Part shown: piece after piece, positions 15,720 through 28,960 of the stretch | Position numbering within the stretch: position 1 is the stretch's first letter | Layout of the letters: the number at the start of each line of letters is the position of its first letter | Source of the DNA: Guillardia theta CCMP2712 | Lineage: Eukaryota > Protista > Cryptophyta | Length of the DNA stretch: 64,000 bases | Reading direction: 5' to 3' | Assembly (NCBI RefSeq): GCF_000315625.1 | Contig: NW_005434604.1 | Location: 310,001-374,000 of the forward strand | Translations under genes and position numbers: made by a program | Notes under the pieces: model-generated | Database searches by the model: none | Told to the model about the DNA's origin: nothing | Seen by the model: only the letters and a program-made list of their open reading frames with translations

Positions 15720-15900
15720 CATGAGCCGGGCGGCGGGCCGCCCGGCGCGGCGCCGCCCGGCGGTCCCGGGGCGACTGGCCCGGCCGCGGGCGTTCAGTGA
15801 CTTGTGTCACTAGTACCGTACGGTAGTGCCGCGCGACTCCCCCGGCCCCGCCGGGCGCTGCCCCGTACGGTCACCTTCGGCTGCGACGTTGAATGATGTA
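15720..15900. other. GC-rich intergenic island C
   Basis: CCGG/GCGC clusters, GTACCGTACGGTAG, GTGAC/GTCAC, GACTC. Confidence 0.55.
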
Positions 15901-18332: not shown

Positions 18333-19827
18333 ATGCATGGAAATTTTCCGTTTCTCCTGCAAGTATGTCCATCAAATGAAAATCGATGGCGTGTGCTCAT
18401 GAATAGTGGCAGTCACCGTCAGGACGTGATCCTGGCGGAGGATCACTCCCTCCAGACATGTCAAACGGAACGAAGTTTACCCGTGAGGTGTAAACTTCGT
18501 CTTTGCTATGGTTGTGTTGGTAGTCTGAAAATGTGCAGGAACACATGAAGTTCTTGAGAGCACTCGACGAGTTGGACTCAAACATCAACGGGAACGAATG
18601 GGAAAAGATTGCCAAGGAAGTGGGGAAGAGTGAGAACGAGGTCAAGGTGACAAGTCGATCAATGCTGTCTGAGCTTTCGCGTGACTGCTTTACAAGGTTC
18701 ATGCTCAGCAATACTTTCTCAAGCTCGAGAGAGAGCGAAGGATTCCAACAGAGAACGTTCTTTCGTCAGATCAAAACATGTCTAGCCAAGCTATGCAACC
18801 ATACATGTCGTCCTCCTTCATTGTTCCATTTGGAGGCGAGCTGTCTTCGAGTTCCAACGATCCTACGCAATCCAAGCCACAGGTCGTAGCTCCCCTCGAA
18901 TGTTTGCTTTCACGCCCTGAACTCATGGTCAGGGTGTGGTCTGGACACCTGAAGAAGCTCGTATTTTCGAAGACAAGATATCAGAGATAGATCCCAATGA
19001 TGACGACCGGTTAGCTTCGTTGCTCTCCCCGCAAGTTTTGACACATGTGCAGTTGGATGCGGATTGCCTCTCTGTTACCAAACAAGAGTGCCGATGATGT
19101 TCAGAGCTACTACACGTGGCTGCAAAATCTGCTTAGAGCTCGTGGAGCGGGTCAATCTTCCTCAAGTCCGATTGACCAGGCTACAGGGAAGAAGTCTGGA
19201 AAAGAAAAGGGAAAACTTGAGACTCATGGGCTGTCTTGGACCGAAGAAGAACATAGACGTTTCTTGGAAGGATTGGAAAGATTTGGGAAGGGAGATTGGC
19301 GGAACATATCAAAGCATTGCGTCGTCACTAGGACTCCCACCCAAGTCGCTAGTCATGCCCAGAAGTACTTTGTCAGACAACAAAATGCTGCTAAGAAGAA
19401 GGAGAAGCGCCGCAACTCCATCCATGACATCACGCCAAGCTCCATCAAGACCTACTGGTCGGGAGGCAAGGAAAAGGAAGGCTCATCTTCCCCGGATGAA
19501 GGAAACGAGAGTCAGGAGAACGAGAACCAACAAGGCACGCAAGGTTCGAGCAGCAACAACACCAGCGGTAACGTCTCTGGAGGCGCATCCAACCAAATCA
19601 ACCCGCTGAAAGGCGAGGAGACCAGCAAGGGAATCTTCGACTCGCCGACGAACAATTGTCTGCCACCAGAGACGCCACTTGGCATCTCCTTGTTCAGCTC
19701 CTTGTTACCCTCAGGCAGCGGGCCCGAGGCATCCATCTCATCCGGACTGACTCCTGAGGCCTCCCCCTTCGGGACCATGACTCTCTCTCAGCTCCAGGCT
19801 GGACTGCTGAAACCCGACGGCGCGTGA
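18333..19827 (+). CDS. MYB/SANT transcription factor with three repeats (DIVARICATA-like pair plus an extra N-terminal SHAQKYF-like repeat)
   Basis: Spliced: [34 protein letters not shown]; [32 protein letters not shown]; [55 protein letters not shown]. Confidence 0.92.
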
Positions 19828-23039: not shown

Positions 23040-24305
23040 GTTATACGTGTGCTGCCAGGCAGAGTCTTATTCAGAATACCTTCAAATCTCAACATAATTG
23101 TTCTCTATATGAGATCGACAATTTCAGCTTATCTAGCACGGGACGCGGCCACAGCTGTACTTGATATTGGAATGCATCGCCAGCCTTATGCCCTGCTTCT
23201 CCTCTGATCCCACCAGGTCGGCACCTTCCCCTTCTGATTAGCATCGTTTTCTTGCCATGCTCTTTGCACATCCATTGGTGTGAACCTGAATGGGAACACC
23301 TCCACATGGAGAGATGAATTATTTGATGAGTGTGCTGCAAGCAATCAGACATGTGACCAGCCTTTGTCAAGCATGAGCATCAGTGTGCTTTCATGCAGAA
23401 AGGGGGCGAATCATACAAAGCATTCCATCAACATCGATCGTGAGCTCAAGAATTCATTCTACCATTATCAACAAACTCACAGGTAGACGGCAATCAATCT
23501 AAGTCTATATGTCCAGAATTGCAAGATCTGAAGCCGTAGAATGCATTGCGCTCGTCATGCATTCGAGGTATCATCATACAGATCCAAAGTTTTCTTTACT
23601 GATGTCGACCTGGCAACCTTGCGAGAATGTCTTTCAAACAATGCCTAACAGCGAGATCGTGATGAGACATAAAACGTCGAGGCAGAAACCGTAGCAAGGA
23701 AAGCAATGACGGTAGAGCTCTCTGCAAGAGCAATGACATCTCACACCGTATCAATCACTTGCATCTCATCTACTCTCCCAGCCCTCCACCGCCGCGGCGA
23801 TGCTTGCTGCAATTTCTCAATACGTTTGACTCTGTCTTGATGTGACCATTTAGAATTAGAATAATACCGTACCACCATCATATAGTATGTTGCTTTCGCC
23901 ATAATCTTTTTACTTTCGGTCTTAAGGCTAGCATAGAGCACAACACTTATACTGTACAACAGCTGCTGGTTTGGAGACCATTCACTATGTCCGCTGGAGA
24001 AGGAACGACAGGTTGTACCAGATGCAATCGATTGAGGATCAGTGAAACATCAATTATCTGTACCACACTGTAAGGCATTTTCCATGGAAGCAGAGCTCTA
24101 CTCTTTATCGATGGCAACGTATGATATCATTTATTTGCACAATCTTCTTTCAGAGCTGCAGATTCCATCATTAACTCCAGCTCGAGTCTTTGTGGACAAC
24201 ACAGCTGTCATTCAATTTTCTCAAGGATCGTCTCATCAGACACGATCAAAACATTTCAATATGCCCTTCCATTACGTGAAGGAAGTTCAAACAAGCGTCA
24301 TTGAA
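23040..24305 (+). mobile_element. decayed Ty1/copia LTR-retrotransposon pol fragment (RT and RNase H remnants)
   Basis: QHNCSLYEID/(frameshift)ISAYL resembles the copia RT motif; AID*GS.KHQ then EAELYSLS.A..DIIYLHNLLSEL..P..VFVDNTAVI...HQTRSKHFNMPFHYVKE matches copia RNase H; stops and frameshifts; no LTRs seen. Confidence 0.8.
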
Positions 24306-25071
24306 ATATTTCATTTTCGGATCTGCTTACGACGATCCATTTTCGTGTATCTTTTGGACGCCTCCGTGATCAAGCTGCACAACCCCAGCGCGCTTGCATT
24401 TCTTCTGACCGGCTCTTCTTGACACCTTCGGGGGAAGAAGTAGAAGATCAGCGTGGCATCAAGATTTGAGCGACTCCATCAGCAGATCTCTTGCGTCGAA
24501 AGATGTCAAGAAGCTATGAGGAGGTTCAAATTCAAGAAGGGCAGCATCATATCATTGGTAACTTCTGATTCAACTTTGCTTTGACGAGGCAATTGCAGTA
24601 CATCATTGTCATCATCGGAAGGGATCGGAGCAAATATTTTATTCACGAAAAGGAACTCGGAACTGGACAATCTGACATTCATGAATCTTCATGAGGATAC
24701 AAGCATCAACATCGATATATCATCAGTTGTCATTCTCAGCTTTCGACGTCAAATCTGTCAACCCAATCAACGATGTCTTCGAGGAAGGGTGTCAGAAGAC
24801 AGACAGTTATGTATGAAACAGAGTAACTGTCTCAACTCAAAGTCCCATCGTCAAGCTGTTCTCTGTGTTGTTGTTGTGAGAGTTTATAAATGCTTTCTTG
24901 CACTTCATCCACTTATTCCTTCAACACTTATTCCTTGAATACGTGTCACAATCTTACTACTCTGTCACAGTAATGTGCATAAGAAACACACAGCATATCC
25001 TACAGTTGTAAAGTCAGAGCACTTGGCTGGGTACCGTCTGAATAACCTCAACGTGGTGTACTCTCTCACAC

Positions 25072-28000
25072 CCGCTCCTCCCTTGTCCTCTTTTTCCGCT
25101 CCTTCTTGGCTTGTGCCGCCTGGTTTTCCTGTTTGAAGCGTTGCTTGCAATGGCTGCATCCGCGCTACGCACACCATCTGTCAAGTCTCATCACAGGCAC
25201 AAAGAAGCACCTCATTGTAATTCTCCCATCCTTTGGACCTGCCGCACTGAACGCCGAAGTCAATCATCACATTCAGCGACAGGTCTATCTCTCTCGATCT
25301 GCTCAACTTACATTCTGCCATGGTTGTTTTCACCAGCAATGTACAACAACACAAAATTAGGAGGGCTTCAAAGAAAGTACAACGGCAATTCTTACACAGC
25401 ACTGACGATGTGAGTCACAGCCATACGAAAAAGGAGGAAAAAGGAATGTTAGTCCCCACAACCTCTGTGCCGCATCAATTGCATTCGGTACTCACACACT
25501 ATCCCAAACCATTCAAGCAGAAACATAAGGATTTGCACAATGAAATGTCAGCCAATCGTCCTCTTAGCGTGCATATTCGTCACTTACATCCTTTCCAGCC
25601 CCATCGAGAGTACAATCCGAGCAACAAACGATGAAATATGCCAAATGCATGTCAGCCAATCGTTCCCTGAGCGCAGCATTCACAATCGTCACTTACATCC
25701 TATCCAGTCCCATCGACAGTCCATCCGGGCATTAACCGTACAAAATCACAATACCATGTCAGTCCAATCGTTTCCTGACCGCATCTTTCAAGATTGTTAC
25801 TTACCATCTATCCAGTCCCATTCACATCCCAGCCGATGCCAAAACGAAAAAACGCAAAACCATATGTCAGTCCCTCTCGTCACCTGAGCGCATCTTTCAT
25901 CATCGTTACTTACATACTATCCAGCCCCATCAACAGTCCATCCGAGCAATCACCGATAAATACGCAAACCAAATGTCAGCAAATCGTTCTCTGAGTGCAT
26001 CATTGCATGTGTTACTTACTTTCTATGGAGACGGATTCCATCCATCCAAGCCATGAAAATATAGGATTTGTAAAACAAATGTCACCCAAATCGTTCACTG
26101 CCCGCATCATTTCATATGATACTTACTCGCTATCAGGCCCAAGTTCCATCCATCCGAGCAAGAAAAAAAATGAAATTGTCAGTCTAATCGTTCCCTGAGC
26201 GCATCTTTCATAATCGTTACTCACGTACTATCCAGCCCCATCAACAGTCCACCCGGGCAAAAAGAATTGCAAGGTTTATGTCAGCCAATCGTTCCCTGGG
26301 CGCATCAGGAAAGTGATACCGGCTATCCAGACCCATCAACAGTCCATCGATAAAAACCCGAATAAAACACAAATGCATGTCAGCCAATCGTTCCCCGACT
26401 CCGTCATAGCATATGATACTTACTCCCTATCAGGCCCACATTTCATCCATCCAAGGAGAAAGAATAGAGTTTGCAAGTACATGTCAGCCAATCGTTCCTT
26501 GAGCGCATCAGTCATCATCCTCGTCACTTACATTCTATACCGCCACATTCCATCCATCCGGGCAACAAGCGATGAGAATTGCAGAACACACGTCAGCCAA
26601 CTGTTCCCTGAGTGCATCAGTCAAACTCGTTACTTACTGGCTATCTCGCCCCACGAGCAGTCCGTCAGGTGAAAACAACGACAAAAACACAAAACCATAT
26701 GAGCCAATCGTTCCCTGACCGCATTATTGCATGTGATACTTACTCCCTATGCAGACCAATCCCGTCCATCCAAGCAAGGGAAAAATGAGAATTGCAAGGT
26801 TTATGTCAGCCAATCGTTCCCTGACCGCATCATAGCATATGATACATACTCGCTATCAGCCCAAGTTTCATCCATCCAGCAGAAACAACAGTCATTACAA
26901 AGTGCAAGTCAGTCAAATTATTTCTTTCTTAAGGGAATGATGGGCTTCACCGGGCAAACCTTCTTATCGCCCCTGTGATCTTCCTCCGTTTCTGCACACC
27001 ACTTGCAGGTGCCATTGTCATCCCGAACGAAGGTCTAGATAATTTATCAAAGTCCAATCGTTCCCTGAGCAAAAGGCTGCTTACATAGCAGGACTTGGAA
27101 GATCCATGATGATCCTTTTCAAGCATGGAGCAGATCTTGCACTTTCCTTCGGCTCCAGCTTGGAAACTTGCCTGTTGTAGAATTACAATCCAATCGTTCC
27201 CTGACCGCATCATAGCATATGATACATACTCGCTATCAGCCCAAGTTTCATCCATCCAGCAGAAACAACAGTCATTACAAAGTGCAAGTCAGTCAAATTA
27301 TTTCTTTCTTAAGGGAATGATGGGCTTCACCGGGCAAACCTTCTTATCGCCCCTGTGATCTTCCTCCGTTTCTGCACACCACTTGCAGGTGCCATTGTCA
27401 TCCCGAACGAAGGTCTAGATAATTTATCAAAGTCCAATCGTTCCCTGCCCGCATCATTTCATATGATACTTACTCGCTATCAGGCCCAAGTTCCATCCAT
27501 CCGAGCAAGAAAAAAAATGAAATTGTCAGTCTAATCGTTCCCTGAGCGCATCTTTCATAATCGTTACTCACGTACTATCCAGCCCCATCAACAGTCCACC
27601 CGGGCAAAAAGAATTGCAAGGCATATGTCAGCCAATCGTTCCCTGGGCGCATCATTCATAATCGTTACTTACATACTATCCAGTAACGTTCCGTACATCC
27701 GAGAAACAAGCGAGAAAAAGGCAAAACCAAATGTCAGCCATTCGAGCACATCATTCATAATCGTTCCTTACCGACTATCCCGCCACATTCCATCCATCCG
27801 GGCAACAAGCGATGAGGATCGCAAAATGCATGTCAGCCAATCGTTTTCATGCACTGATTCTCACCGCCTTTCAAGAAAGAACAATTACAAATCATCGTGA
27901 AACAAAACAAACAGTCAGGTACTTCAGGGTACAACAAAACAAGAAGTCGGCAAACTTACGCACTTCGTCTTGTCAGAGGTGCCCAGATCGACGATTATCT

Positions 28001-28084
28001 GAAACATCTCACGTCACAAGTTCTGAAGCAAGCATTGTGTCACAGCTTCTCCCTTGCCTGGCAGTTCGGACAGTTCCACTGCAT
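25072..28084 (-). CDS. micro-exon gene encoding a Cys/His zinc-finger protein (about 29 exons; 3' end unresolved)
   Basis: Exons 28058-28084 MQWNCPNCQ (GC donor); 27960-27998 IIVDLGTSDKTKC; 3-nt exons A,S,Y,Y,R; 27331-27414 TFVRDDNGTCKWCAETEEDHRGDKKVCP; R; 27085-27171 ASFQAGAEGKCKICSMLEKDHHGSSKSCY; 26951-27034 (copy of 27331-27414); R,G,P,N,G,P,Y,R,K,Y,M,D,D,C; CC; N; 25211-25246 CGRSKGWENYNE; 25072-25164 RGCSHCKQRFKQ...; all phase 0, no stops. Confidence 0.75.
25490..27870. repeat. degenerate ~100-108 bp tandem repeat, about 20 units (each an intron plus micro-exon)
   Basis: recurring ATGTCAGCCAATCGTTCCCTGAGCGCATC...ACTTAC-NNN-CTAT...CCATCC; exact duplications 26810-27067=27190-27447 and 26098-26274=27445-27621. 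Confidence 0.95.
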
Positions 28085-28109: not shown

Positions 28110-28960
28110 GGTGCTAGTAGTGTGTAGGGGCGGTGGCGGAACCCCCCCTTTGACCGTAACTACCCCTGATCACCGTGATGTTTCTTAGCTCACAGAGGAT
28201 ATCGAGTCTTTTTTATTAGGGGGGTTTCCCGTCGCAGTTTCCTACTTTCTGACTTTATTCAAAGTAATTTGAAATTCCTGAGACGTCTTGCGGCGAGGCC
28301 GACTCGGAGACCACAGTCCAGCGCTGCCGTTTCCTTGTTCACCGAGGCGAGCGATCCCGGGCGTCGCTGGCCGGGCCAGATTCTACTATGATCAGTTTAC
28401 CCCAAGTTCCACCACTGGCACTGACTCTCAGTACACCTGCGATCCTCAGCACACCGAGCTTCAACGGTAGTTCTCAACGCTGTACAGCTTTACAACCTGC
28501 TGAGTTCCAACACTTCCACTGATGATGAAAGAAACCGTCTTTCGGGGGCCCCGCCCCGACTTTCCGGAGTCCGAAGTTCCCTAAGCGGCCCGGGCCCTCT
28601 CACTGTTCCCTGCCTCATTGGCCTCCAGGCCCTCGTCGATCCCCCGGTAGTAAGTACCCACCTAGTAATCGGACGCCGTTGAACATCCGAATTCTCGGTC
28701 CGACATCTTCGAGGCTCAGTGAGAAGTTAGTTCACCGGTAAGACACATTACTCTGAACTTTTCACCGACTCCAAGAACTTATCCGGGTTCTTACTTTTGT
28801 GTGAGTCGGCGTGAAACGGCCCGCAGTTCGCCGGCCGGCCCGGCGGGCCGTACCGCGCGCGGCGGGCCCGGGTGTCAGAGACGGCCGGGCCCGGGGATCG
28901 GACCGTCCGGGAGTCTGTAGGTGAGGCTTCCGGGCCCGGCCCGGTTAAGTTGAAATCGGT
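28110..28960. other. GC-rich intergenic island D with G/C-run flank
   Basis: CCGG, GGCC, GAGTC/GACTC and AAGTT clusters; lies between the micro-exon gene and the formin. Confidence 0.55.

Follow-up and report, generated by a model that had tools for sequence, protein, structure and literature searches.

Strings of one-codon exons in a cryptophyte gene family and their putative diversification in the DNA

Brown algae possess ROCO and NB-TPR genes that have been described as candidate immune receptors with shuffled exons (Teng et al. 2024, PMC11378527, where Zambounis et al. 2012 is cited for these exon-shuffled receptors), the unit being a 72-bp phase-2 exon that encodes a leucine-rich repeat (LRR), and splice isoforms have been reported for them (PMC11378527). 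By analogy, the gene family of the cryptophyte Guillardia theta that we describe here would work most like these brown-algal receptors. A variable N-terminus built of tandem exons of the same phase, apparently shuffled at the DNA level, stands ahead of a Roc-COR core in both, a role in binding specificity has been proposed for the brown-algal proteins, and repeat-only copies without an effector are found in both. The Guillardia unit differs in being one codon, in phase 0, within a Cys-rich module to which Cys/His cassettes may be added; TIR, PARP and kinase-RING domains are also among the effectors, and no skipping was seen in the contigs available. The Guillardia arrays do meet the criterion of exon-unit shuffling in the DNA, within and between genes, as far as can be judged from their sequence patterns, and the copy with which this work is mainly concerned fails membership of the brown-algal group, having neither LRR exons nor a Roc-COR core (present in nine paralogues).

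In Dscam, one exon is chosen from each mutually exclusive array. The Guillardia genes resemble Dscam in their tandem duplicated exon cassettes within a putative recognition protein, but transcripts of the family take consecutive exons in order, and mutually exclusive exon choice was for this reason rejected. The micro-exon genes (MEGs) of schistosomes have exons mostly of ~15 bp, introns of 0.1-5 kb and secreted products with a signal peptide (PMC10526429). They share with the Guillardia genes a majority of very short exons, highly variable products and a tendency to be overlooked by gene predictors, whereas the Guillardia exons are uniformly 3 nt long, their introns of ~100 nt are homologous to one another, and the proteins carry intracellular signalling domains. 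The copy studied here meets the requirement of short exons in multiples of 3 and fails those of a signal peptide, as judged by eye, and of long introns. Finally, plants and animals have isolated microexons of 1-15 nt, single or paired and conserved (PMC8831610), isolated exons of only 1-3 nt being known (PMC8831610, PMC8632122), and the distance from branch point to acceptor is lengthened before microexons (PMC12871342). The Guillardia exons are likewise very short, genuinely spliced and preceded by a distal branch point; they differ in standing in series, from 8 to dozens, and in their hypervariable sequence. Tandem arrays of one-codon exons, of which the first-pass annotation of this DNA knew no example in an alga, were not found described in the full-text literature that we searched, which did not cover most subscription papers.

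Gene model of the window copy

The window is a stretch of 64,000 nucleotides of the G. theta genome, and the gene under study occupies positions 25066-28084 of its minus strand. The first-pass annotation had proposed here a hidden gene of 21 one-codon exons and one 6-nt exon. The minus strand does carry all of these AG-NNN-GT triplets as well as the 6-nt exon. The positions listed mark the lower boundary of each, and the triplets encode 11 amino acids, as had been counted; three cassettes of 84 or 87 nt and two exact duplications were missing from that inventory, and four ordinary exons complete the model. Local joining of the 29 exons, 22 of which measure 3 or 6 nt, yields an open frame of 174 aa with 18 Cys and a single terminal stop. 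Every junction is in phase 0, in agreement with the claim that the larger exons are in this phase and that the product is open and Cys-rich. The 28 introns range between 46 and 106 nt, the first being GC-AG and the remainder GT-AG. Over the whole window, the pattern YAG-N(k)-GTRWG occurs 23 times on the minus strand for k=3 and 3-7 times for other values of k, and for k=3 it occurs 4 times on the plus strand.

Exon 1 (28058..28084) provides the ATG and the first CxxC and has a GC donor; it rests on the joined model, and its GC intron is seen in paralogue transcripts, being still present in L048 and spliced out in P0114. Exon 2 (27960..27998) has 39 nt, terminates in a conserved K-C, and is kept in the paralogues and their transcripts. 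There follow five 3-nt exons (27474..27867; A, S, Y, Y, R), of which the leading A is invariant in the family, then an 84-nt phase-0 cassette with the motif C-x2-C-x6-H-x7-C (type B, copy 1; 27331..27414), a 3-nt exon (R; 27230..27232), an 87-nt phase-0 cassette of the same motif (type A; 27085..27171), a homologue of which is spliced in P0114, P0094 and P0048, and a second type B cassette (26951..27034) identical in sequence to copy 1. The run of fourteen 3-nt exons at 25496..26852 (R G P N G P Y R K Y M D D C) comes next, each exon being preceded by an intron of 89-106 nt with a conserved box, a distal branch point and an AG-free zone. A 6-nt exon (C-C; 25396..25401), invariant in the subfamily and joined to the following exon in transcript L049, precedes a 3-nt exon (N; 25312..25314) that has a fixed place in C-C-N-C and is spliced in L045, L046, L048 and L049. 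The 36-nt exon at 25211..25246 (C..GW..Y) is supported by the joined model and by paralogue transcripts, and the last coding exon (25066..25164) carries a CxxC, a short charged coiled coil and the stop.

No effector domain follows this exon, and none, Roc-COR included, was found in the window. Inspection by eye of the predicted protein, which begins with a polar CxxC, revealed no hydrophobic leader that could act as a signal peptide. The CxxC-x13-CxxC ribbon announced by the first-pass annotation stands as far as its spacing is concerned, the zinc-ribbon fold being supported at the level of the motif and by a low-confidence model only. The Cys/His motifs probably bind zinc, an inference from the motif without support from profile or fold: the Cys/His cassette has no Pfam match, the predicted model of the module (pLDDT ~50) gave no Foldseek hit, and Atlas scores stayed <0.9.

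The non-coding 3' tail (24780..25065) is common only to the effector-less sister copy C261 (L036), with a score of 196 vs a shuffle maximum of 55 and ~69% identity. That this tail is a decayed kinase-PARP exon was rejected, the score of that second comparison lying within the shuffle range. A Copia-like retrotransposon remnant, recognised by eye from an RNase H-like ORF on the plus strand, lies at 24042-24900, just past the 3' tail and ~700 bp after the stop; truncation of the gene by this fragment alone was rejected, given that the tail is common to C261. Upstream, a GC-rich palindromic element (28560-28960) is possibly a non-autonomous transposon, and motifs that resemble it are found at window positions 15733 and 51486 and beside L036. 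The window also contains an ORF for a Myb-like SHAQKYF transcription factor (19045-19827).

The paralogue family, its splice signals and its transcripts

Searches of the genome (87.1 Mb, 669 contigs) by DNA similarity and by pattern located one-codon arrays at more than 20 further places, the two-unit pattern giving 200 matches vs 4 in the control, and 20 paralogous regions were taken for comparison. The layout of the family comprises a CxxC exon, a GC intron, an exon ending in K-C and a fixed Ala in its 5' part; a string of variable 3-nt exons, into which C-x2-C..H..C cassettes of 27-29 aa may be inserted, in the middle; and a Cys-rich end, then a coiled coil and then an effector in the 3' part. 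String length ranges from 8 to 63 residues. Most paralogues fuse the micro-exon module to Roc-COR-TIR (at nine loci), to kinase-PARP or to tyrosine-kinase-like-RING (kinase-RING), as identified with Pfam. The TIR of the family matches the CRISPR-associated TIR Cat1 (E 2.6e-6), and inspection of the paralogues showed the TIR Glu and the PARP H-Y-E motifs to be present. GenBank models of these genes begin at or beyond the end of the array; the whole module is missed by gene predictors, and genes of this kind consequently do not show up in current annotations. A kinase-RING paralogue of G. theta (L047:1-200) has N-terminal LRRs and a hydrophobic segment rather than the micro-exon module, the kinase-RING effector being therefore also used with a classical receptor ectodomain. 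Some arrays, in a set formed by L037 (C146), L030 (C147), L038 (C21) and L039 (C167), look broken or orphaned, being interrupted after C-C, devoid of a downstream exon or reduced to two units, which suggests birth and death of copies. A tRNA-Ile gene with a GAT anticodon, uncommon in eukaryotic nuclear genomes, lies ~1 kb past the C261 array (L036:7122-7195). Some 9-nt 'exons' were rejected as chance matches, one of them falling within a Roc coding exon.

The AG-GT spacing of exactly 3 nt noted in the window copy was put to a test blind to the junctions, in which a profile trained on intron interiors only located adjacent units. All 191 of the 191 junctions, from ~21 paralogous arrays, conformed to AG-NNN-GT with this spacing. 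Neither was the absence of stops from the triplets peculiar to one locus: the 217 variable triplets of the family draw on 41 different codons, which between them specify all 20 amino acids. None is a stop, where position-wise composition would predict 16.3 (P 4e-8), and 97 of the triplets are one change away from TAA or TGA. The two genomic conditions under which the first-pass annotation would have regarded its idea as refuted, a spacing not kept at 3 nt and stops at random frequency, are therefore not fulfilled. Stop avoidance holds after collapsing cassettes at 90% and 80% flank identity (P=4e-5 at 80%) and is weakest under the harshest collapse (70%, TAA/TGA only), where significance is lost (P=0.12). 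The codon set is skewed because of the needs of the splice sites, only 6% of the family triplets having C as their third base. An AG between branch point and acceptor, which lie at a median distance of 59 nt, occurs in just one of the 21 window introns preceding 3-nt exons, where shuffling predicts 19.6, and in 15 of 224 introns family-wide (204.6 expected). In our reading the intron of ~100 nt is recognised as a unit, through its donor, distal branch point, AG-free zone and first AG, with the consequence that introns are removed singly and codons joined in genomic order, as the paralogues show and as we infer for the window copy. Long runs of 3-nt exons joined by the spliceosome offer a natural test of intron definition.

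Transcripts of relatives bear directly on the existence of such genes. For the paralogue on C60, the transcript-derived proteins P0114 and P0094 and the contig L048 show four triplets, then a cassette, five further triplets and C-C-N-C, all joined in frame, and the three genomic triplets visible at C60 have the same order as in the transcript. L049, another contig of this gene, has the 6-nt exon spliced to the 3-nt exon while the introns on either side are still in place, and introns are therefore removed one at a time. For the C116 gene, contig L044 has 63 in-frame codons between K-C and C-C, a long, Trp/Leu-rich string that matches two runs of C116 genomic triplets. Within it, L044:54-242 has ~26 codons where the assembly (C116:131978-132478) appears able to accommodate about five one-codon exons, a mismatch that may reflect an assembly gap, a larger exon or a difference in array length between cultures. 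Relatives in another alga, for which the first-pass annotation had proposed to look, exist in Hanusia phi, where L045 keeps the intron after an AG-ATG-GT exon, an intron that is spliced out in L046 from the same gene, and where P0048 carries a cassette and C-C-N-C. No exon skipping was seen in the few assembled contigs of paralogues and Hanusia, which display only full inclusion or intron retention; skipping is not excluded, because assembled contigs hide rare isoforms. The one-codon exons of the paralogues are thus spliced in genomic order, and the idea of a hidden micro-exon gene is upheld through them, the same being inferred for the window copy, whose own transcript was not seen.

Diversification of the strings and the function of the loop

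Comparison of close paralogues locates the diversity in the DNA, in so far as sequence patterns can reveal it, the recombination process itself being inferred. In the Roco paralogues L022 and L029, 900 nt of effector exon align at 99.4% identity and the 5' flank at 96%, and yet their strings, of 12 and 11 positions, have only 2 positions in common; other close pairs behave similarly. The unit of shuffling is a single exon-centred cassette of ~105 bp, shared exactly between genes: where the downstream flanks of two cassettes are nearly identical, the upstream flanks of these exons match too in 51% of cases, against 9% across the intron to the next exon and a background of 4%, and this linkage decays at a conserved box of ~27 nt surrounding the branch point. 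Different genes have nine exact matches of 110-127 bp in common, each of which covers a single cassette from one box to the next; four of these connect a Roco gene with a kinase-RING gene, where they stand in the opposite order. The two exact duplications of the window copy, of 258 bp (26810..27447; 27447-27190 = 27067-26810), with both ends inside the conserved intron box, and of 177 bp (26098..27621; 27621-27445 = 26274-26098), with two one-codon exons, likewise terminate at the box. Exact matches end in the box more often than expected (P 1e-4 and 4e-4), an excess that is inflated because such matches extend through any conserved box. A weak hairpin can be drawn in the box, without a shuffle control, and no weight is placed on it. 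The new aspect of this system would then be that array diversity arises in the DNA, through exon-centred cassettes that end in a conserved intron box.

The triplets also change on their own. When cassettes whose flanks are nearly identical are compared, 28-37% of the triplet sites differ, against 7-10% of held-out flank sites, a change 3-4 times faster, and triplet variability exceeds that of all but one of 100 flank columns. Nineteen single triplet changes include 3 synonymous ones vs 4.3 expected under neutrality; positive selection is therefore not shown and was rejected as an established fact, and the triplets may change rapidly because constraint on them is relaxed while their flanks remain constrained.

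Putting these results together, we propose that the N-terminal Cys-rich module of this cryptophyte gene family carries a loop written one codon per exon, each codon being embedded in ~105 bp of intron DNA that is homologous from unit to unit. This homology would allow unequal exchange or gene conversion, ending in the box, to add, remove or swap exactly one residue in frame; exchange of the same kind may equally move one Cys/His cassette, within and between genes, and point changes would accumulate in the triplet in addition. The loop may constitute the variable recognition surface of intracellular non-self sensors with Roc-COR-TIR, kinase-PARP or kinase-RING outputs. We infer this role because a hypervariable N-terminus is combined with TIR, PARP, Roc and kinase domains, whose outputs are taken from established domain knowledge; it rests on domain content and variability without ligand, pathogen or phenotype. 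The long C116 string, unlike a short binding loop, counts against it. The window copy, lacking an output domain, would most likely be a stand-alone sensor or decoy and a donor of cassettes. Our reading as a whole, that it is an expressed effector-less sensor or decoy with a shuffled one-codon loop, is given a probability of about 0.6, its expression being unproven. If correct, exon shuffling would be pushed to its limit, one residue per exon, and would offer a concrete and testable way by which a unicellular alga, of whose defences hardly anything is known, could acquire hypervariable receptors.

Other readings of the same data have to be weighed. The family could be real and the window copy a young or silent pseudogene that has lost its effector and serves as a passive reservoir of cassettes, as would fit the window without an effector, a sister copy (C261) that stops directly after its last CxxC and has no effector either, the Copia-like fragment beyond the stop, and the fact that no transcript-derived protein of this copy came to light. 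We consider this unlikely, although it deserves to be kept in mind, for the frame is open, all 28 introns have canonical ends, and the coding parts are intact despite a non-coding tail that has diverged to ~69% from that of C261; the databases, moreover, contain few G. theta transcripts and were queried with paralogue sequence. A more general objection is that the loop is a functionally neutral linker and the array a selfish or drifting repeat that grows and shuffles within the limits set by frame and stop avoidance. The lack of a dN/dS excess, the wide range of string lengths and the skew of the codon set towards splice-site needs all speak for it. Drift alone does not predict that so costly an architecture should recur on expanded signalling families of unrelated lineages (see below), and the triplets are more variable than 99 of 100 flank columns; we therefore regard a neutral linker as rather improbable.

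That the arrays diversify mainly by alternative splicing, with skipping of the Dscam or MEG kind and many isoforms per gene, would be permitted by their symmetrical phase-0 exons, any skip of which keeps the frame, and the window copy has a few weak sites (the donor at 26319 and the branch points before 26640 and 26022). We give it little credence, since every spliced contig available includes consecutive exons in order with intron retention as the only variant, and since turnover in the DNA already accounts for the differences between paralogues. As to a satellite repeat that mimics splice sites by chance, Tandem Repeats Finder does mark parts of the window array as a 99-109-bp repeat, and the first-pass annotation had remarked on this satellite-like look. 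Satellite status is refuted for the family by the spliced paralogue transcripts, the fixed spacing, the AG-free zones and 41 codon types without a stop, and virtually no weight is left to it here; true satellites that fit the same pattern show little variety of triplets, and 100 of their 519 triplets are stops.

Arrays and cassettes outside Guillardia

A profile of the cassette finds metagenome contigs with the same Cys-rich module. One fragment, L051, has 3-nt exons with different introns. In L050:3030-3420 the module is intronless, with two cassettes and short strings resembling spliced triplets, and has the appearance of a processed retrocopy, made from a micro-exon gene after splicing; close to its start, the contig carries telomere-like repeats.

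A generic three-unit splice pattern occurs in at least 120 metagenome stretches, 80 of which were analysed, the arrays being split by triplet diversity alone. Among the matches listed, 24 of the 25 diverse arrays are free of stops, the 14 stops (40 expected) all belonging to one satellite-like locus, and the homogeneous arrays hold 100 stops. Two groups were distinguished. The arrays of the first (L080, L127, L066 and L123; related L056, L057, L059, L069, L077, L099, L102, L106 and L119) are stop-free, with 18-50 diverse 3-nt exons and introns of ~55-65 nt, and lie downstream of an exon for a septin/MMR_HSR1-like GTPase; their nearest Atlas clusters are Basidiomycota (score 0.98), and L099 and L102 encode homologous peptides from different samples. 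Those of the second (L052, L061, L105, L124 and L093; also L085, L089, L096, L111 and L115) are AT-rich (GC ~0.2), with stop-free 3-nt exons and introns of ~100 nt directly upstream of kinase exons, and presumably resemble the TKL kinases that have expanded in arbuscular mycorrhizal fungi. We found no DNA similarity of either group to the Guillardia arrays, and the basidiomycete-type and AT-rich arrays appear from their sequences to be unrelated to them, being as yet without transcript support. They suggest the same annotation blind spot in fungi.

It is conceivable, though we would advance it only tentatively, that one-codon arrays are a general and overlooked generator of diversity in eukaryotes with independent origins in cryptophytes, basidiomycetes and AT-rich fungal-type TKL kinases. 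If true, recombination between look-alike introns would edit the loop of a receptor residue by residue, carried by Roco-TIR, kinase-PARP and kinase-RING proteins in cryptophytes, by septin-like GTPases in basidiomycetes and by the AT-rich fungal-type TKL kinases. The Cys/His cassette itself occurs in other contexts: two copies are inserted within the AAA domain of an RFC1-like protein from an unidentified organism (P0076 and P0083, with the cluster member P0101 named replication factor C subunit 1), and two copies precede the ankyrin repeats of P0090.
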